DNA of 64,000 nucleotides from Anthoceros angustus. Its lineage: Eukaryota > Plantae > Anthocerotophyta. The DNA lies in the NCBI GenBank assembly GCA_010909165.1, contig MU008160.1:1674001-1738000 (forward strand). Direction: 5' to 3'. Shown here piece by piece: positions 48,885-63,700 of the stretch. Both the position numbers and the translations under genes were made by a program. The notes under the pieces are model-generated. The model was not told the DNA's origin, ran no database searches, and saw nothing but the letters and a program-made list of their open reading frames with translations. How positions within the stretch are numbered: the first letter of the stretch is position 1; every line of letters starts with the position of its first letter.

Positions 48885-51800
48885 GGTAAGCACCGCCTAA
48901 GAAGTCTAACTTCCCAATGGTGCATTAGATTGAGGATGCTTATCAAGATAACCATGTGCTGGATTCTCCTTGGCTGAGAGAAGATTGTCTCCGAAAGTTT
49001 ATGTTGTTGTGGGCACAGGGGGGACATGGAGGTACTTGATCCATGCCTTGACGGGCACTGGATCCTACCTATGGGTTGGATTCTTAAGGAGGAAACTCTC
49101 AGCCGACCCATCCAGGATTCAAGAGCTCACCGAGGAGGAGTACCAGACTATGCGGCGAGCACAAGAGAGAGAGGAGTCCAGCTCTGAGGAGGTAGAGATT
49201 TTATGGGAGAGATTGCCCAACCAGCCAAGAGGGAGGAGAGCAAGAGGAGAACATGGGGCTAGGCGGCCTAGGAGGCCCAGGAGAGGTAATAGGGGTAAGT
49301 GGCCCTGAAATAGCTAAAGGCCCATGTGTTATAGACTGTAAATCTTATCCTCTCTCATAGTGGACAGAATTGATAGATAGGCCTCTAGGATTGGTAGGCT
49401 AAGACCGATTGGTATTTTTGGCAAGCCAAGCCGCTTTGTGGGTCGATCTTGGGTATAAGAGGCACTTGATGAAATGTAAGCAATGTTGGCCTAAGTCTCG
49501 GTGTTTGGGGTGAGCACGGGGTTTGGGAGGGTTCCAGATCCAGTCTTTGTAAGCCTAAACCGTTCCTCAGAGGAAGACTACTGTTGCCCAGATCCGTGTG
49601 GCCGATCCGCAAGAGTGGTGGAAAGCAAGGAGGGAGCCTTGTGATCTCCTTGGAGGAGTCCTCAAGGTCAAGAGGAAGGGGTCGGGAAGCCGGGAGGCTG
49701 TCCCTCCTTTACTCATTCTCTGCGGTTTGTCTAGTACTCACCTTGTGTTTAAGTTTTTCAGTGTCAAGGTCGCAGGAGAGAAGACAAGGCGGGAGCCGTG
49801 TGTGTGAAGGAGGAAGTCAAGTGAGTGAGTGTGGGCTTGTGGGTTTGGAAAATGAGAGGAAAAGTGAGCCGTAAGAGAAGTGGAGAATCTTTGGGCATGG
49901 AGAGTTGCTGATTGGCTGTTTGAGAGGAGTAAGAAGGGCTGGAAGTCTGTAAGAGATGGTTGTGTTCTTGAAGAGAGAGAGAGAGAGGAGTCGAGGAGGT
50001 TGAAGATCCGTGAGTGGATGAGACGGAATGATTGCGAGAGAGATGAACAAGCATTTTGAGAGTTGGTGAAGTCTGTAAGGGCCTGGATGAGAACCTTGTA
50101 AGGACTGGAAGTGTTGTGAGTGGAAGTGGAGGTCGAATGGGGGAGTGAGAACAAGGAGGTTGAGAGAGTTCTGGGAACTTGGAGGTGTGATGAAAACACA
50201 AGGTGTTGGTATGGGTTGGAAGGTGAGCTGAAAGGCTGGAGAGGGGCAAGGAAGTCAAGTGAGTCAGGTTGGGCTTGTGGGTTTGGAAAATGAGAGGAAA
50301 AAGTGAGCCGTAAGAGAAGTGGAGAATGCTGGGCATGGAGAGTTGCTGATTGACTGTTTGAGAGGAGTAAGAAGGGCTGGAGAAGTCTGTAAGAGATGGT
50401 TGTGTTGCTGAAAGAGAGAGCTGTGAGTGGGGGTTGAAGATCCCGTGAGTGAGTAAGACGGAATGATTGCGAGAGAGAGATGAACAAGCATTTTGAGAGT
50501 TGGGAAAGTGCTGTAAGGGCCTGGATGAGAATCTCGTAAGGACTGGGAAGTGTTGTGAGCTGTGGAAGTGGAGGTCGAATGGGGCAGTAAGGAGTGAGAA
50601 CAAGGAGGGTTGAGGGGAGTTGCTGGGGAACTTGGAGAGTGTGATGAAAACCTGAAGGTGTTGGTATGGGGTTCGGAAGGTGAGCTGAAAGGCCAGAGAG
50701 GGGGCAAGGAAGTCTGAAGAAGTGCTGCAAGAGTGAGAGGTGGAGGGGAGTTATGAGAGCGGTAAGCACCGCCTAAGAAGTCTAACTTCCCAATGGTGCA
50801 TTAGATTGAGGGATGCTTATCAAGATAACCATGTGCCCGGATTCTCCTTGGCCGGAGAGAAGATTGTCTCCGAAAGTTTATGTTGTTGTGGGCATGGGGG
50901 ACATGGAGGTACTTGATCCATGCCTTGACGGCACCGGATCCTACCTATGGGTTGGATTCTTAAGGAGGAAACTCTCACCGACCCATCCAGATTCAAGAGC
51001 TCACCGAGGAGGAGTACTGCATCATGCGGCGAGCACAAGAGAGAGAGTCCAGCCGAGGAGGTAGAGATTTTATGGGAGAGATTGCCCAACCAGCCAAGAG
51101 GGAGGAGAGCAAGAGGAGAACATGGGGGCGCCTAGGAGGCCTGTGAGAGGTAATAGGGGTAAGTGGCCTGAAATAGCTAAAGGCCCATGTGTTATAGATC
51201 AGAATCTTATCCTCTCTCATAGTGGATGTAATTGATAGATAGGCCTCTAGGATTGGTAGGCTAAGACCGATTTTTGGCAAGCCAAGCCGCTTTGTGGGTC
51301 GATCTATAAGAGGCACCTTGATGAAATGTAAGCAATGCAAAGTCCTGGCCAATGAGCACGGGGTTTGGGAGGGTTCCAGATCCAAAGGTCGAAGCCTAGG
51401 CACCGCTCCTCCCCAAGAAGACTACTGTTGCCCAGATCCGTGTGGCCGATCCGCAAGAGTGGTGGAAAGCAAGGAAGGGAGCCTTGTGATCTCCTTGGAG
51501 GGAGTCCTCAAGGTCAAGAGGAAGGGGTCGGAAGCGGGAGGCCGTCCCTCCTTTACTCATTCTCTGCAGCTTGTCTAGTACTCACCTTGTGTTTAAGTTT
51601 TCTGAGTGTCAAGGTCGCAGGAGGAAGAAGACAAGGCGGGAGCCGTGTGTGGAGGAAGTCAAGTGAGTCGGGCTTGGGCTTGTGGGTTTGGAAAATGAGA
51701 GGAAATGAGAGGAGAGAAGTGGAGAATGGAGAGTTGCTGATTGCTTGAGAGGAGTAAGGGCTGGAAGTCTGTAAGAGATGGTTGTGTTCTTGAAGAAGAG

Positions 51801-52136
51801 AGGTGAGTTGAAGATCCCGTGAGTAAGACGGAATGATTGCGAGAGAGATGAACAAGCATTTTGAGAGTTGGTGAAGTGTAAGGGCCTGGATGAGAACCTG
51901 GGGAAAGGCTGGAGTGTGGAAGTGGAGGTCGAATGGGCAAGAGGGAGGAGAACAAGGAGGTTGAGAGAGTTCTGGGAACTTGAGAGTGATGAAAACCTCA
52001 AGGTGTTGGTATGGGTTGGAAGGTGAGCTGAAAGGCCGAGGGGGCAAGGAAGTCTGAAGAAGTGCTGCAAGAGTGAGAGGTGGAGGGGAGTTATGAGAGC
52101 AGTAACCCTGATTGGTGGATCTAACTTTGTGGATGA

Positions 52137-52172
<36 letters not shown>

Positions 52173-54140
52173 AGCCTTATCCACTTGGATCCCGAATTGG
52201 GTCCCACCATTCTATTAATAGCCCGACCTGATCCCAAGGTGGCCCCCCCTCTGCTAGAAATAGAGGGTGGTTGCTAAGTTAGCAAGATCATCCGTTCGGG
52301 GTGGCATCGAGGTCGTGGCTAAGATAGCCAGTCAGTGTTGTTAGGGGAGTCACAGTGCATGGCGCTAGATGTTTTGGTGTGTCCGTGTTTGGTTGGATTG
52401 GCTATGTTTTGGTTGTCTTGACACGAAATCACTCCCTTGGGTACGAATCTCAAGTCTACAACGATAAAGAGGGTAAATGTGGCCTCTTTGTGACCACTTG
52501 GTTTAGAAAATCACTCCACAATAATCCAAGACCTCAACATTGGTCTTAGTCAAATGAGTCTTAGGTATCTAAAGGGACAATTACTTATGGCTTTCGGGAT
52601 AATAGCCCACTTGTGTCCATTATCGACTATGCATGCCGATTGGCATCTAATCCGGACTAGCGGAGCATCTCGGCTTATTGTTTTAAGTTGTCAAATGGGG
52701 CGATTAATTTGAGCTCTAAAAGCACTCGATGGCTCTTTCGTCCACAAGGGCCGAATATGACCAGTCTTTGTAAGCCTAGGCACCGTTCCTCTGCCACAGT
52801 GAGAAGACCTGTTGCCCAGATCCGTGTGGCCGATCCGCAAGGGTGGTGGAAAGCAAGGGAAGGGAGCCTTGATCTCCTTGGAGGGAGTCCTCAAGGTCAA
52901 GAGGAAGGGGTCGAAGGAGGAGGCTGTCCCTCCTTTACTCATTCTCTGCAGTTGTCTAGTACTCACCTTGTGTTTAAGTTTTTGAGTGTCAAGGTCGCAG
53001 GAGAAGAAGACAAGGCGGGAGCCGGTGTGTGTGAAGGAGGAAGTGAGTCAGGTGTGGGCTTGTGGGTTTGGAAAATGAGAGGAAAAAAGTGAGCCGAGAG
53101 AAGTGGAGAATCTGGACATGGAGAGTTGCTGATTGGCTGTTTGAGAGGAGTAAGAAGGGCTGGAGAAGTCTGAGATGTTGTGTTCTGAAGAGAGTGAGTG
53201 GAGGTTGAAGATCCGTGAGTGGAGATGGAATGATTGGGGAGAGAGATGAACAAGTATTTTGAGAGTTGGTGAAGTCTGTAAGGGCCTGGATGAGAACCTT
53301 GTAAGGACTGGAAGTGTTGTGGCTGTGAAGTGGAGGTGAATGGGGCGTGGAGTGAGAACAAGGAGGTTGAGAGAGTTCTGGGAACTTGGAGGTGTGATGA
53401 AAACACAAGGTGTTGGTATGGGTTGGAAGGTGAGCTGAAAGGCTGGAGAGGGGCAAGGAAGTCAAGAAGTCTTGCAAGAGTGAGGAGGGGAGTTATGAGC
53501 GGTAACCACGATTGGTGGATCTAACTTTGTGGATGAGTAGAGAGAGAGAGAGAGAGAGGTCAGCTTATCCACTTGGATCCCGACTGGGACCCACCCCTAT
53601 TAATAGCCGACTGATCCCAAGGTGGACCCCCCTAGAAATAGAGGTGGTTGCTAAGTTAGCAAGGTCATCCGTTCGGGGTGGCATCGAGGTCGGCGTGGCT
53701 AAGATAGCCCGAGTGTTGTTAGTGATCACAGTGCATGGCTAGATGTTTTGGTGTGTACTGTTTGGTTGGATTGGCTATGTTTTGGTTGTCTTGACACGAA
53801 ATCACTCCCTTGGGTACGAATCTCAAGTCTACAACGATAAAGAGGGTAAATGTGGCCTCTTTGTGACCACTTGGTTTAGAAAATCACTCCACAATAATCC
53901 AAGACCTCAACATTGGTCTTCCGTCAAATGAGTCTTCCGGTATCTAAAGGGGACAATTACTTATGGCTTTCAGGATAATAGCCCACTTGTGTCCATTACT
54001 GACTATGCAGATGCCGATTGGCATCTAATCCGGACAGCTAGCGGAGCATCTCGGCTTATTGTTTTAAGTTGTCAAATGGGGCAGTTAATTTGAGCTCTAA
54101 AAAGCAGACCTCGATGGCTCTTTCGTCCACAAGGGCCGAA
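48885..54140. repeat. Interleaved internal duplications (X Y X' Y' Z Y'' Z') with purine-rich about 440-nt repeats and (AG)n tracts at about 52140-52170 and 53537-53557
   Basis: cggtaagcaccgcctaagaagtc at about 48885 and 50760. gaagtcaagtgagt..gggcttgtgggtttggaaaatgag at about 49813, 50251, 51655 and 53040. gattggtggatctaactttgtggatgag at about 52110 and 53510. Confidence 0.88.
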
Positions 54141-56996: not shown

Positions 56997-58623
56997 GGTG
57001 CAAGATCATAGTTTAGGAACCCATGACGGTTGGTTGCTAATCTCAGGAGCATCGGCGTCCTGAATCAGTTTGGTTCTCCCCTCTATGTGTTTTTATGAGG
57101 GTAGGGGTTGATGTGTTAGGTTTTTTGGAGCGTTTTTATAGCGTGCTCAATAGTGGAGTGATAGCCGACTGATGTGATAGTCGGCTTTTTGTACAGCGTC
57201 TTTATGAATACAGAACATTATCTCTAAAGAAAGGTCACAGTTTAGGTAATCAAATTAGAATTATGGATCCCGGGCAAGTGTAAAGGCCAGCACCCAACCT
57301 GCACCTGGCCTACACATATCAGTACCCGAGTCTAATTTCGCTCAAACAACGGGGTGGAAGGCACAATAAGGAGACGAGTTGAGGTGATAAAGAACCTAAA
57401 AATGGGATACCAACAGTCCTTTTAGGAGTACCGGCGAACGGTGTAGTGAGCTTTATCAATATCTATGTGAAAGTCACATGAGTTGGCAGGCCAGAGTGAG
57501 GCGCGTGATGCGTTTCATGACGACTCAGACCGCCCTCCTAACCACAGGTAAAGAGGTTTCAAGCCCCTTCTAAGGCGATTCTAATGCGCTCTCTATTCGA
57601 TCCAAGGGTGAATTCCTTGCCGGTTTTGGATGTTGCAAGCATGAGAGCATGTAGCTCGATGTAAAAGATGTTGATTATGATTTAAATGGGAATTCTTGGT
57701 GCCAGATTGAGGCAGCAATTACTTGTTTTCATTCGGAACGATGCAAATTGAATGGTTCATCATATTGGGGTTAACTCAAACATTCGTCCACCTAAAGTTA
57801 AGGAACATTGTTACTAGCAGAAGTATAATTAGCCCCTCGTTTTTCTCTTGATAAATACAATCCATGGTATATATATTATTGCTAGAAGAAGAAAAACAAG
57901 TGGCTATTAGAACTAGCTCATATAACTCAAAATGAGAGAATAAAAACGATGTGATATCATACTACATATATGCACAATCAGCTCGCTGTGAACTAATGAG
58001 TTAGACTAGATTCTCATACATTATTATTCTATCAAGATAAATACTTGAGATATCCAATCTATTCATTAAATTAATTTGATGGATGAATCTTAAACTTTTC
58101 AATCCAGTAAAAGACATCCAAATGTATTGAACCATATTATGTATATTATTATTATGATATTTTTTATACACACCTATATATCTATAATGAACACACATCA
58201 CTATCAAGTTTGTGAGAATATTGCAAACTCATTTATGTAGCTTATGTGGATGGGTTACTCTCAAAGTTGAACCAAGTGCTCACGAAGGGGTTCGCAAGCG
58301 TTATTAGGAAGAATTTAAATAATTAAAAACTAACGTTTTTGTTTTTATATCGCTTACAAGTAACCTTCCTGTTAATATCCGGGCAAGGGGATGAGTGTGT
58401 CTTAGCTTTTTTACAAGTGAAGCGAAATGGGGGACAGGGTAGCAACGGAGACATGCGAGGGAATCTGGGACAGATGCAAAAACAGCTGAGCAAACCAGAA
58501 AGCACTGTGCGAAAAGCAGGAGGAGAATGTGGCGCTGTCTCATCAAGCTTCCAGCCTGCAGGCTACAAATGTGGAGTCAAAGGTGAAGCTGGCAGCCCGG
58601 CCAGTGAGCTCCTCCATCCGCCC

Positions 58624-60217
58624 ATGGCTTGCGCCGCATTCCCGCTACCGCCCACAAATGCCGTCAGTCTTCCAGCCCACCACCCACCAGCAGCAGCATT
58701 GCCCCATCCACGACCCAACATCACTCTCCACCCCCGCATTGCCCACGATGCCCAGCAGCGTCCGATACCCCTGCTCCCGGCAGGCGGAGATGGAGGCTCC
58801 GGCCCCACCTTCCTCTTCCCGGCCGGGGGAGGGGGCGATGGGGACGGGGACAAGGCCGGGCGGAGTCCGAGCTGGAGATGGAGCTGGAGCATGAGCTGGG
58901 CTGCCCTGGCTATGGCGGCCGGAGCGGGGGACGCGTTCACACGGCCCAGGAAGGCGACTGCAATTGTGCTGGACAGCAGCACCCGGCAGACTTACGTGGG
59001 GGAGTTCGCTGCCAAGTATGCCGAGGTTGGTGTGGGCGGGAGAGTAGGGTGCCTAGAATGGAGAATGTAGCCACCGGGTTGGTCTGGTTGGATGGACGAC
59101 AAAGCTCAGGAAATGCAGGGCGTGGTCTGACAGGCTCTGCGCCAAGCCTGCGAGCAGTACGGGTACGAGTTCTACGACTCCCCCTACCAGCTCAACATTG
59201 TGGGAGTGAGGAATCCGTCGGACGACCCCGGGGCGTTCGACGACCACTTCGCCGTGGTTTACAGCACCGGGGAGGAGGGGGGGCAGCCGTCCGGTTGGGT
59301 GGTACTGTCTGCTTCTACAGCATTGGATGTGGCTGGTAATTTTGCTGGTGGATATGGGGTAAATGGGGATGTGCTGGAAATGTGTGTATGATGTACAAAC
59401 GTGGTTTCAGGTGACCAGCTACACGGCTTCTGTGGATCCGGGCAGAGCATGGCTGACAATGGGGTGGGGGGGACCCGGGGGCACGGCGATTCTCTGTCCT
59501 GGGCAGTATGTGGATGCCTATCAGGTACTGTTTGTCGCTGCAGGAGGATTGGGAGGAGGAGAAATGGAAGGACTGATTGTTTGCTGGTGGGCTTGTTGCT
59601 TGTCAGGTGGGCCTGCACAATGGGAAGTACGAGGCTCTGGTGCAGGAGCGCCCTGTGAAGGTGTGGAGGGACCACGACCGGGATGGGAAGCTTGATTTTG
59701 GAGAGCATGGAAGGTGGGGTGAGGTGAAGTGTTTGTCCTGCTTCAGTAGGTGGGGTTTCAGGCAGGTTGGCTGCCCGTACCTGATGTTCATGCTGGTGCT
59801 GATGCTCTGGTGTGGCAGTTTCGACGATGAAGGCCTGTTTGGTGTGAACATACATCACGCTGGGATCAAGGATACAGCGGAGTACAAGTTTCTGTTGACC
59901 AAGTATACGGATATGGTGGAGAAGTACTCGGCAGGATGTCAGGTTGCTGTGCTTTCCCTTTCTGTCTTGTTCGGTGATGTGAACTTGTTGGTGGTTCTGT
60001 TCTGGTCTTGTGGTTGCTGAAATTTGCTTCTGCTGTTTGTCAGGTGATTGCGACGGAAGAGGATTTCGGGCATTTCATGGAGACTGTGAAGCTGTCCGTG
60101 AGGAAGGGGCACAAGCCCTACTTCACCTACACGTTGTTCCAAGGGGAGGAAATGTGGGATACCATCTCGGGCCCCTTGCAACAAGCCAGACAGACTTTGC
60201 AACCGTATCTCACGTGA
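58624..60217 (+). CDS. L,D-transpeptidase (YkuD)-like protein of bacterial/phage type with plastid-like N-terminal extension (362 aa)
   Basis: Six exons with consistent phases: 58624-59025, 59134-59301, 59411-59524, 59607-59713, 59819-59942, 60044-60217. Spliced motifs LNIVGVRN, FDD, DPG, TAILCPGQY, GLHNGKYEALVQ, VWRDHDRDG, FGVNIHHAG, YSAGCQV, FTYTL. Confidence 0.8.
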
Positions 60218-60796
60218 TCTTGTTCTGCACTGTTGAGACACTGTGAGTTGAGTTAGAAGCAGAGTCACCATGCTACAAGACAGCAACTTGTGGCCTTCTC
60301 TGTCATTGAAACAATCAATAACCCAAGACCTTGGTAGGAATGACGCTCGCAACAATGCCAAATGTCATTCTAGAAGGGGAGGGTTTCCCAAGACGTTTTT
60401 GGTTGTGCAGATTGCCAACCCCGGGAACGAAATGTGCTTGCTAGATCTGCCTTTGAGAGCTTCTGCACTGCATCGCAACCATCCCGAGAAACAATGTGCA
60501 CACATCATCCCATACAGTCACAGAAACTTCTGCTTTCAGGTGCGAGATGCAATGAAACAACAGTAGTTGATTTGACACATTCTTCTGCGCAGTTTGTTAT
60601 TGGGAAGCACACCTTCGAGGGAGACAGGCAAGAGACAGTTTCATCTGCCTGTCCTCCGCGCAAAACAAGACATTTGATGAACCCCAGACATACCATCCTT
60701 TTCTAAGGTCTGTCAGGAGTGATTCAGACATCCAGATGCCTGCAGATTTGTACCCTCGAAGACGGCAGGAATTGAAGACAACACACCAACTCCATT

Positions 60797-63700
60797 TCAG
60801 ACTCGCCTGTTGTAGGACAACTTGCTGCTGCACTCCAACGTCCACCGCCTCTGCCCTTTGCTGCTCGGTTTGGTAAAATTTGATGTCACCGGCTTCTCCA
60901 GCTTCTCGTTCCTGGTGAAGCTGCTTCTCACGTTCTCAGCTGCAGTGGGAAACTCCCTCTGGTCTGGTCTCACCGAGAAGCCTGTTTGAAAGTGTCTCAA
61001 GGAGCTGCTTCTGGACGTCCGCATCGATGGCTTGCTCGCATCCGCAACGGGAGCCTGAAACTGCTCGGCCATGTTGTGGTGCTGAGATCTGAGGACTCCT
61101 TCATCTGACGAGTGTCGGACTCTATGTTGAGGTTTTGCGTCCAAGCCTGCAGCATTCGTCTTGCCGGGAGACGGAAGGATGTTCTCTCTGATCCTTTGCC
61201 AGTGCTTGGATTGTGGGTCCAGACTGACTCTCCTCTCAGTTTCGATGGTGTGCCTTCTTTCCAGCTTCACCACAGAGCTGCTGGCGGCGCTGAGATTCAG
61301 GTCTGTGAATTTGCACCCGAAAGCCTTCCTGAGATGGGTTGCGCTCTTCTCTTCGATCTTGAGCACTCTGTCCCCGGTGCCTGCAAGCAGTGTGTCGAAG
61401 TCCTCTGATCCAAACCGATGCTTCCTCCGGCTGCTGGCGGTGGGAGTCATGAACCTTGGGAGAGATGCAGGAGTCATTACTGCTCTGGCTGCTGGCACAG
61501 TTCTCGCATGCGACTCGGGTTCGGCTATGGCGGCCAAGGAAGTCCTCACTCTGATAGGCGGGGGAGCCCTGGGAGTCTCAGGGATGGCTTCAGCTTCGAT
61601 GGGAGTGGCAGGTCGGGGCTCCTCGTGCTCCGACACAGCCTCTGCACCGATCTGTTCCGGACTAGCCTCAATTTCCTCTTCTTGCTCAAGTGCGGCAGCG
61701 ATTTCCTGACTGGCCAACAGTTCTCGCAATTCCTGCTCTTCCTTCAGCTTTGCGGCAGCTTCCTGCCTCGCCAGCTCCTCCTCTTCTACCCTGCGTTCCG
61801 CAGCTGCTACTTCCTTCGCTGCTCGGTCGTGGTTCTCTTGAATCTTGGCCTCGACTTTCTGGATCCTTTCACTGATCTTCTGGCACTCACTCTGGTAAGA
61901 CTTGATTTGCTTCAGCAGTGCAGCCATGGCTGCTTCTTTCTCTTCCTTCTCGGCCTGGAGAGGTGGAGCACAAGGTCTGGTGAGCAAATTTCACTCCATT
62001 TTAAAAGCAAGACTGGATGCCCAATTCAGCATTGTGCTTACCGCAGTGAGCTCCCTTCCCAGATTGACACCCTTGGCTCTCTTGCCGAAAGCCAGAGAGC
62101 AAGCAGTCTCACCCAGATCATCTTGCTTCGGACTCACATGCACCAACATAATGGTTTTGGAGTCCTCGCCTGCAATTTCTTCAATATGTTAGTGCACATA
62201 ACAGAGCTGGGAAAGGGCTGCGTCGACATCATGGGCTCGATGGACCAGCAGACTCACCCAAGGAATCCTGAAGAATTTGCGTCAGTTTGCTATTCCTGCG
62301 TGCAGTACAGAACGAAAGCTTCAACAGGCAAGTTTTTGATTCTTCCAGCGACTACACAAGCACAAGCAGCAGCAAGTCTGCTGCCAAGAACGAAGACCTG
62401 CCCCCATTCGAAGACCATACCTGAAGGGCACATGAGGCTGCTTCCTTTGCAGCGCACTGATCACGTCACAAAGTGCTGAGAGTGACATGTTGATGGACTT
62501 CCCTTCCTGCAGAGTCTGGCCCTTAGCTTGAGTCTTGAGCAGTCGCTCACTACCTCCCAGATCAATGAGCCACATCTTACTATTGGTCTTGCTGCCATCT
62601 GGATAGTTGCAGGTTATACTGATTCGCAGGAGGCTGCAACATGAGATACCCCAAAGTCAAGACACTCTGGCCCATGGCCTGCAATGCGAGACGAATATGT
62701 GACGAAAGACGATGCATCACAAGCTCACTCACCAATGAGACCTGCTGGAAGCCTCGTTGGCATTCGTCCAAGACGTGGATCTAGTCCGACTTCCGATGTG
62801 GTACAGCCTTTTTGCTTGCTGGAAATCGGAGACAGGAAGCTCCGACAGGTTCTCGACTTCGATGAACCCCGTCGGACCCATTTGAATTGACAGGCTGCGC
62901 ACAGGAAGGAACACCACACCGAAAGCGGTCATGTCCCATTCTAAAATTCAGCAGGTGCGTAACGCGTATGCAAGGAATGCGCATGCATGACGAGTCCTAC
63001 CACTTGGGAGGAGGGTCATTAATCCGGGTACGGCGAGGAACCAGCAGATCTCGCAAGGAGCCCATGTAGACTTCCAGCATGCTCAAGGAGTAGCTAAAAT
63101 GGGCGTCGCTCTCCTTGGACGCTTCGATGAAGAGCTGCTCCAATGTGCGAGGTACAACTCCCGGACAATCCTTGTTTCCCTCCTGGCATTCCAAAAGGCA
63201 ACCCAATCCATCAACATTCCTCACTCTCGCAGCAGGCATCAATCAACCTTCATCCCACCAGCACCAGCGACAACGCTAGCTACCCATACCATGGTGAAGG
63301 TCTTCCCAGTGCCAGTTTGCCCATACGCGAAAATGCACACATTGTGCCCATCCAGCGCCGACTGTATGATGGGCTGCACCTCGGAGAAGACATCATCTAG
63401 CAGCAAGACGGAGAACGAATCAAAACCAGCCCAGCCCAGGCTCTGCAACTTCCACCAGCCTGTCTCCGTCATGACACACCTGCCAGGAGACGTAGCTCAC
63501 TCACCTTGAGGTGCCACGGGATCAAACACTCTGTCAAATTGGAAGTCTTTGGCCACCTTCCCCGGCGCCGGGATGATGACCTTGTCAGCGTCAGGAGTGA
63601 CAAGAGGCCCAGTCCTAGCCCGACGTTCGTTGGGCAGTAGAGGCCTCACTCGACAAAAAACTCTGATATTCCCTGCAAACTCCACCGAATCCACTCCCAT

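Follow-up and report, generated by a model that had tools for sequence, protein, structure and literature searches.

Bryophyte chloroplasts retain a peptidoglycan layer, the cross-linking and turnover chemistry of which is largely unknown; the plant genes known to serve the plastid wall account for its synthesis, a penicillin-binding protein and a few hydrolases. Does a gene of bacterial or phage affinity in the genome of the hornwort Anthoceros angustus add an enzyme to this set? The gene in question occupies positions 58624-60217 on the plus strand of a 64,000-nucleotide (nt) stretch of contig MU008160.1 (hereafter, the window, to which all coordinates refer). Here, we report that it is a functional nuclear gene, spliced, expressed and under purifying selection, and that its product, as judged from structural models of two relatives, has the YkuD (L,D-transpeptidase-like) fold with a catalytic-type His and an S-x-G-C motif. 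The chemistry, substrate and location of the enzyme we infer from family context, models and analogy. The reading we favour, with a confidence a little short of even, is that this phage- or bacterium-derived enzyme is delivered to the plastid envelope and would remodel the plastid peptidoglycan by hydrolysis. As a conserved expressed gene, it is a concrete candidate in plastid peptidoglycan chemistry.

Six exons joined from the three forward reading frames of 58624-60230 add up to 1089 nt, that is, 362 codons and a TGA stop. The five introns are 82-109 nt long and all have GT..AG boundaries, and the GC content of third codon positions in the coding sequence is 72%, compared with 50% GC in the window; the window contains a single copy of the gene. 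RNA contigs from three species, aligned to 58300-60600, skip all five introns exactly. The contigs of run X1 (organism A, the species of the window itself) show zero letter differences from the window; for organism B (runs X2 and X3) and organism C (run X7), identity to it is about 95% and the splicing is the same. A first-pass annotation of the window had joined the same six exons into a 362-amino acid (aa) protein and proposed an RNA check of the junctions; the RNA contigs of the three species confirm the model, and every motif that it quoted is present in the spliced protein. The features of the gene, some of them defined by comparison with the orthologue from the peat moss Sphagnum, are as follows.

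58430-58623, plus strand: 5′ leader of the transcript; the RNA contigs start at 58430 (X7), 58438 (X2) and 58497 (X1)
58624-59025, plus strand: exon 1, encoding the protein leader and the linker into the enzyme domain
58624-58782, plus strand: first part of the protein leader, residues 1-53, Pro/Ala/His-rich, with one acidic residue and three Arg and without a hydrophobic core
58783-58851, plus strand: Gly/Asp-rich stretch, residues 54-76 (GGDGG ... GGGG-DGDGD), with a Sphagnum Gly run at the same relative place
58870-58929, plus strand: Ser-Trp hexamer-repeat segment, then a weakly hydrophobic Ala-rich stretch ending in A-G-A-G, residues 83-102
58930-59025, plus strand: end of exon 1, linker into the first domain helix with a conserved STRQTY-GE motif (Sphagnum alignment; homology from about residue 129)
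59026-59133, plus strand: intron 1, 108 nt, GT..AG, skipped in the X1, X2 and X7 contigs
59134-59301, plus strand: exon 2, start of the catalytic domain, with Arg160 (NIVGVR) and Asp171 (FDD)
59302-59410, plus strand: intron 2, 109 nt, GT..AG, skipped in the X2 and X7 contigs
59411-59524, plus strand: exon 3, DPG and GTAIL-PGQY strands, 90% identical to Sphagnum
59525-59606, plus strand: intron 3, 82 nt, GT..AG, skipped in all four runs
59607-59713, plus strand: exon 4, invariant His232 (GLH-GKY) and Arg249-Asp250, then a DxDxDG-type loop (residues 250-261)
59714-59818, plus strand: intron 4, 105 nt, GT..AG, stop-free and in frame, skipped in all four runs
59819-59942, plus strand: exon 5, His276 (codon 59853-59855), a 10-residue insert and Ser301-Ala-Gly-Cys304 (Cys codon 59937-59939)
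59943-60043, plus strand: intron 5, 101 nt, GT..AG, skipped in all four runs and spliced also in a Sphagnum transcript contig (L005)
60044-60217, plus strand: exon 6, C-terminal helix, FTYTL strand, terminal helix and TGA (60215-60217)
60218-60600, plus strand: 3′ untranslated region; the RNA contigs extend past 60600 into a convergent neighbouring gene

Comparison among the three species reveals constraint on the coding sequence. Its indels, of 6 nt and 21 nt, are multiples of three, 10 of the 11 listed interspecies differences in exons 2-3 fall at third codon positions, and exon 5 differs from organism B by a single nucleotide in 120 nt; the leader, with frequent first- and second-position changes, is fast-evolving. 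A bacterial contaminant or a decaying transfer, that is, a gene that does not work, would share with our sequence its bacterial affinity, the sole point in favour of that explanation. Five spliceosomal introns confirmed by RNA in three species, intron positions in common with Sphagnum, the third-position bias of the substitutions and plant genes on both flanks all argue against it; contamination is rejected on the introns and the RNA evidence, and we give the explanation as a whole practically no credence.

What, then, does the gene encode? The queries of our database searches were the stop-free window piece 59577-60017 (exon 4, intron 4 and exon 5), the Sphagnum orthologue and an algal relative. 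With the window piece, tblastn found matches in crAss-like Bacteroides phages and P2-like Pseudoalteromonas phages, where the matching genes stand alone, encode about 200 aa and bear a hypothetical annotation, and large protein collections yielded several hundred bacterial and metagenomic relatives. Residues 129-353 of the spliced protein are 45% identical to a relative from the MMETSP marine-eukaryote transcripts (P0041; E = 2e-56), and the protein matches many bacterial proteins of 200-225 aa at E of about 1e-45. Exon 4 alone of the window piece matches PHROG 3000, a group of unknown function (E = 2e-11), to which the phage homologues align with E of 3e-32 to 1e-63; the same homologues match the C-terminal third of PHROG 33083, an endolysin (E of 1e-10 to 4e-20). 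The first-pass annotation had noted a resemblance to an uncharacterised family in bacteria and phages, and these matches bear it out.

In sequence, the link to the L,D-transpeptidases stays below threshold. There is no Pfam family for the phage and bacterial homologues; searches of the separate exon pieces against Pfam returned zero matches, and neither these pieces nor the phage homologues gave any hit at the gathering threshold of the Pfam YkuD family (PF03734), to which three of 87 family members show weak hits (best E = 0.01). The threshold of Tlde1_dom/DUF2778 (PF10908, 30.1 bits) was likewise not reached, the one hit being to a phage protein, DAC16 (15.1 bits, E = 0.032). NCBIfam matches were confined to fused LysM or lysozyme parts, and a sequence profile searched against the Protein Data Bank (PDB) produced chance hits only. 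Profile-profile comparison (hhalign) with E. coli LdtA-D and DpaA was non-significant (E = 0.076); in that alignment, SAGC falls on the SxGC of E. coli LdtA, with the His within one residue.

The conserved residues delineate an active site. Across 99 sequences, Asp171, His232, Arg249, His276, Ser301 and Cys304 (window numbering) are invariant; Arg160 is invariant in an alignment of 87 sequences and present in more than 90% of the 99. His276 and Cys304 are 28 residues apart, the value of 24 in the first-pass annotation being the distance from the second His to the Ser. That annotation had remarked on a long His-Cys spacing, which holds for the hornwort protein and not for its bacterial relatives: the spacing is long because of a 10-residue insert confined to eukaryotes, so that 28 is found only in eukaryotic sequences, whereas 320 of 408 family members, bacterial in origin, have the canonical 18. 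In LdtMt2, the pair is His336 and Cys354, with a spacing of 18. Directly after the invariant Arg-Asp, residues 250-261 (59664-59705) read D-H-D-R-D-G-K-L-D-F-G-E, a canonical calcium-binding loop pattern (DxDxDGxLxxxE) that is present in the plant copies and fitted in part by bacterial members; the loop may be a calcium site. Low-scoring EF-hand look-alikes, obtained in a Protein Atlas search of a read-through open reading frame (ORF), were caused by this DxDxDG loop and were set aside.

The fold was examined with AlphaFold models of the algal relative (pLDDT 89.2, pTM 0.87) and of the Sphagnum orthologue domain (pLDDT 91.6, pTM 0.89), the latter being 72% identical to the domain encoded in the window. 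Foldseek against the PDB placed L,D-transpeptidases and their kin on top with weak E values (best 4e-3), almost all of the 50 rows shown being of that fold. In VIA-align, Z reached 8.8 and the top 50 entries were all of the YkuD fold; with the Sphagnum model, 16 entries lay at Z 5.3-8.1 and the next at 2.3. A search independent of Foldseek over 48,161 representative chains retrieved 20 chains at Z 5.1-7.7, followed by the next at 2.8. This set comprises Pgp2, Csd6, Bd1075, LdtGo, Ldtfm, LdtMt2/5, YcbB, DpaA, Tlde1a and 4xxt; 19 of the 20 are named YkuD-fold enzymes, and for 4xxt, titled a fused amidase/peptidase/peptidoglycan-binding protein, the fold is only presumed. The individual Z values are in the middling range by the search tool's own scale, and the assignment is safe because the matches are exclusive and the gap below them is wide. 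In the AlphaFold database (AFDB), the fold neighbours include a DUF2778 cluster, with TM-scores of 0.64/0.74, and another cluster labelled "murein L,D-transpeptidase catalytic domain family". The YkuD fold with its His and Cys, proposed in the first-pass annotation on the strength of the motif, is thus recovered by Foldseek, VIA-align and the 48,161-chain search, with the motif in the expected elements of the models.

Where did the gene come from? Its closest full-length relatives are of two kinds: Sphagnum proteins, 460-476 aa long and annotated as "unnamed" or "hypothetical", which come from at least seven species, and MMETSP transcripts with a C-terminal LysM domain, from one alga. Sphagnum genomic contigs contain all five introns of the window gene at identical positions and an extra intron in the leader; the two proteins are 72% identical in the domain and 37% in the leader. 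In a quick IQ-TREE tree, the eukaryotic sequences, four rows in all, group as a single clade (SH-aLRT 96) that is surrounded by sequences from bacteria and prophages, and a second tree with named genomes repeated the clade, flagged as a meeting of long branches; a long stem branch leads to it. The 10-residue insert, unique to the eukaryotic copies, supports a single eukaryotic origin independently of the trees. The comparisons support an origin from a phage or bacterial cell-wall-lysis gene acquired by an ancestor, in agreement with the horizontal acquisition inferred in the first-pass annotation. Given the hornwort host, with which the 50% GC and the introns of about 100 nt are in keeping, a gene common to the window's lineage and Sphagnum predates the hornwort/moss split.

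The domain is found in lytic settings throughout its bacterial and phage relatives. Its fusion partners are GH24 phage lysozyme and LysM domains, PG_binding_1/3, GH108 and Amidase_2 and, in AFDB clusters, SLT transglycosylase, NlpC/P60, amidase, lysozyme and SH3 domains. A membrane-anchored copy of 222-224 aa, found in Ohtaekwangia and on a metagenomic contig related to it, directly follows a lysozyme consisting of GH108 and PG_binding_3, within a single-direction cluster of small genes without a Pfam family that has the look of a prophage lysis region. A search of representative bacterial genomes with a 13-row alignment identified at least 573 loci with a relative, the 80 closest being almost all from Bacteroidota; the family is present also in crAss-like phages. 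Because the fused and neighbouring genes are lysozymes, amidases and peptidoglycan-binding domains in prophage-like clusters, the ancestral role of the family appears to be peptidoglycan degradation. The gene also defines a large uncharacterised branch of YkuD-fold wall enzymes, found mostly in Bacteroidota prophage-like regions.

Two observations on these relatives stand apart from the argument. The Bacteroidota copy with a C-terminal membrane helix always follows the GH108 and PG_binding_3 lysozyme (L013:7233-8669 and L014:7434-8675), and the pair may represent an undescribed two-enzyme lysis cassette of prophages or tailocins. A metagenomic protein of 285 aa (P0040) joins the C-terminal half of the domain to an N-terminal fragment of LpxR (lipid A deacylase), which may be a chimeric assembly or a real fusion.

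If the hornwort enzyme acts on peptidoglycan, the lytic contexts and the marginally better structural matches to the L,D-carboxypeptidases Pgp2, Csd6 and Bd1075 lead us to favour hydrolysis at the L-centre of diaminopimelate (DAP) clearly over the synthesis of cross-links. The opposite view, that the enzyme is a genuine L,D-transpeptidase of the plastid envelope and forms cross-links of the 3-3 or another L,D type, was the principal proposal of the first-pass annotation. It draws on the fold and the Cys/His motif of that class, on the ability of an amine acceptor to resolve a thioester intermediate and on the same leader argument that serves the hydrolase, and Tlde1-type relatives catalyse both reactions. 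The family is lytic in all its genomic and fusion contexts, however, the nearest solved structures by Z are L,D-carboxypeptidases and the Pfam YkuD threshold was failed, so that 3-3 cross-linking has become less likely and now seems to us rather improbable.

The leader bears on the case for the plastid. In organisms B and C, the transcripts include in-frame ATG codons at 58453 and 58474, and the indels of these organisms in this stretch total +6, so the upstream reading frame is kept; the protein could start 57 aa earlier than 58624. The contig of organism A starts only at 58497. A hydrophobic N-terminal signal peptide is absent at either candidate start, and the beginning of the leader resembles, in composition, a transit peptide rather than a signal peptide. 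The GGDGG and GGGG runs lie within residues 54-71 and A-G-A-G at 99-102; the Ala-rich stretch, in which the best 15-residue Kyte-Doolittle mean of this leader segment is only 1.0, may serve as a cleavage site for type I signal peptidase or associate with a membrane. Relatives carry the 6-nt and 21-nt in-frame deletions in the Ser-Trp/Ala-rich segment, and Met90 is replaced by Leu in organism B; a short secreted isoform starting at Met90 was set aside on account of this replacement. The Ser-Trp segment is encoded by an imperfect AGCTGG hexamer repeat, with one unit fewer in organism C (a 6-nt deletion at 58886). The Sphagnum leader opens with 100 residues that are Ser-rich and basic; next come an acidic stretch containing 4-10 consecutive Gly, a segment with SW-SW and a hydrophobic stretch whose last residues are small. 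The plan of the leader is kept between the window and Sphagnum even though its sequence is not. Among Sphagnum species (P0253, P0254 and P0157), the polyglycine run varies from 4 to 10, with the flanking acidic residues kept. A Protein Atlas search with the Sphagnum leader returned uninformative scores of about 0.4.

A leader of this kind has a possible counterpart in Toc75, in which a transit peptide is followed by a part with polyglycine; Toc75 is the sole chloroplast protein known to use such a signal (PMC5147994). Its second part is cut off by the plastidic type I signal peptidase, polyglycine after a transit peptide retains passengers at the intermembrane space, and a tri-Gly is essential (PMC5147994). 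By this analogy, the hornwort leader would be sorted to the envelope, which supports the plastid reading. All surveyed hornworts have a complete set of peptidoglycan synthesis enzymes (PMC8964177), and the moss precursor is a meso-DAP-type pentapeptide (PMC9434261), which is the substrate class of L,D-enzymes and in that respect fits the same reading.

We therefore propose the following sequence of events as a model. The mature protein, approximately residues 107-362, would be a YkuD-fold cysteine enzyme in which Cys304, activated by His276, attacks the carbonyl of the meso-diaminopimelate L-centre in a stem peptide, forming a thioester. Water would resolve the thioester, making the enzyme an L,D-carboxypeptidase or an endopeptidase that trims stems or opens cross-links. 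The leader of about 105-130 residues, with its transit-peptide-like start, polyglycine/acidic stretch and weakly hydrophobic segment with small residues at its end, most likely routes the enzyme to the intermembrane space of the plastid envelope, the site of the bryophyte plastid peptidoglycan, where it would remodel this layer during plastid growth or division.

Several points weigh against this model. Fold similarity by itself, here between computed models and solved structures, does not tell a hydrolase from a transpeptidase. The order of elements in Toc75, with the hydrophobic part ahead of the polyglycine, is reversed in the hornwort leader, and polyglycine runs are common in GC-rich genes. 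The natural role of the family, wall destruction, would suit defence equally well. Finally, the distribution is patchy: the gene was found only in the lineage of the window (three species), Sphagnum and one MMETSP alga and was not found in the other annotated plants searched, in a database whose plant coverage is incomplete. Physcomitrium, Marchantia and other annotated plants with plastid peptidoglycan yielded no such gene, in a database that also lacks hornwort transcripts, for which reason the absences count as weak evidence; as far as they go, they do not fit a core component of the plastid wall.

The patchy plant distribution is, at the same time, among the arguments for a different role, in which the domesticated lysis enzyme would attack bacterial walls, in defence or in the control of a cyanobacterial partner. 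Hornworts and Sphagnum both host cyanobacteria, the family is lytic in phages and bacteria, and the algal relative has a LysM domain. The amidase Dae2, acquired by ticks through transfer, is a precedent for wall hydrolases in eukaryote immunity (bioRxiv 10.1101/2020.04.10.036376). The leader speaks against this role: it has no signal peptide at either candidate start, its sole internal Met upstream of the hydrophobic stretch is replaced by Leu in organism B, and its composition is transit-peptide-like, with a conserved polyglycine stretch. We consider this role, which is the main alternative, unlikely.

Less probable again, and doubtful in our judgement, is a neofunctionalised enzyme whose Cys-His domain acts on a non-peptidoglycan amide or ester or in another compartment. 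The eukaryote-specific 10-residue insert lies between His and Cys, beside the active site, the stem branch to the eukaryotic clade is long, and the plant copies have a canonical DxDxDG loop, all of which would be in keeping with a new function. Every family-invariant residue has nevertheless been kept, and the 72% domain identity between the window and Sphagnum suggests that the ancestral pocket is conserved.

Searches of the paper library combining L,D-transpeptidase or YkuD with moss, chloroplast, bryophyte, land plants or horizontal transfer turned up no account of a plant gene of this kind, and eukaryotes go unmentioned in a 2025 review of L,D-transpeptidases. The superfamily is an established one; the branch to which the gene belongs is uncharacterised and lacks a Pfam model, and no earlier report of its eukaryotic members seems to exist. 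The gene offers a well-documented example of plants domesticating a lysis gene from a phage or bacterium, to which introns and a leader were added. A bolder and more tentative formulation, to which we assign a definitely minor probability, is that it encodes the first eukaryotic L,D-transpeptidase-fold enzyme, from a phage lysis gene captured before the divergence of hornworts and peat mosses and common to a marine alga, which is directed to the intermembrane space by a Toc75-like polyglycine leader and edits the DAP-type stem peptides of the plastid. If true, this would add a new component to plastid-wall metabolism and a second natural client to polyglycine envelope sorting.

Further observations concern the transcripts and the surroundings of the gene. 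The 5′ leader of the transcript contains an upstream ORF of about 19 codons (58527-58586), out of frame with the main ORF. The read-through ORF 59577-60020 spans the stop-free intron 4; since this intron is in frame and lacks stops, its retention would insert 35 residues between the active-site halves without truncation. In the Sphagnum transcript contig L005, intron 4 is retained and intron 5 spliced out, and an annotated S. fallax isoform (P0259, 375 aa) ends just past exon 4, without the catalytic His and Cys. Downstream, RNA contigs of the 3′ exons continue for more than 3 kb beyond 60600; the convergent neighbour is a Glu/Ala-rich ORF of 396 codons (60797-61987, minus strand). The contigs are probably merged with those of this neighbour, and the 3′ ends of the two genes may overlap. 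Farther away, the window segment 50001-54000 has a strongly positive GC skew (0.3-0.45). Two sets of ORFs on the minus strand, rich in Ser, Pro and Leu and located at about 51.55-52.18 kb and 52.96-53.48 kb, resemble each other and suggest a dispersed direct repeat, and Tandem Repeats Finder found no array in 50001-54000.

How does the hornwort enzyme compare with known systems? Toc75 has an N-terminal extension of 100-140 residues composed of a transit-peptide part, polyglycine and a type I signal peptidase site, for which the hornwort leader offers candidate counterparts; the two have no sequence similarity. Among plastid-wall enzymes, the nearest counterparts are bacterial-type wall hydrolases that are likewise encoded in a bryophyte nucleus: Utsunomiya et al. 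in 2020 reportedly found moss plastid peptidoglycan hydrolases (DipM-type and others) to be needed for chloroplast division. The moss enzymes have M23 and lytic transglycosylase folds and proven knock-out phenotypes, whereas the hornwort enzyme, of the YkuD fold, is known from sequence and models. The Tlde1/Tae5 (DUF2778) type VI effectors are, similarly, a divergent branch of the YkuD fold (Z 5.6-6.5 to Tlde1a), and are wall-damaging, with L,D-carboxypeptidase activity (bioRxiv 10.1101/2020.02.18.954545); the link to them in sequence is one sub-threshold Pfam hit, and no type VI or immunity context was seen in the family of the hornwort gene. With the L,D-transpeptidases (PF03734; LdtMt2, Ldtfm and E. 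coli LdtA-D), the family has in common the fold and the His...S-x-G-C arrangement, the 18-residue spacing of its bacterial members being that of LdtMt2; it differs in falling below the Pfam threshold and in contexts that are lytic, not synthetic. The true sequence family of the gene is PHROG 3000 together with the C-terminal domain of PHROG 33083, whose members, none of them characterised, come from phages or prophages, have no introns, measure about 200 aa and lack the leader and the 10-residue insert. In structure, the best matches are the L,D-carboxypeptidases Pgp2 of Campylobacter, Csd6 of Helicobacter and Bd1075 of Bdellovibrio. Sequence identity to them is low, at 12-20%, the hornwort protein lacks the additional NTF2-like domain of Pgp2 and Csd6, and its family has invariant residues of its own (Asp171, His232 and Arg249). 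Yet over about 125 residues the models align with these enzymes at Z 7.3-8.8, including the Cys/His active-site elements, and it is on peptidoglycan stem peptides that all three work.

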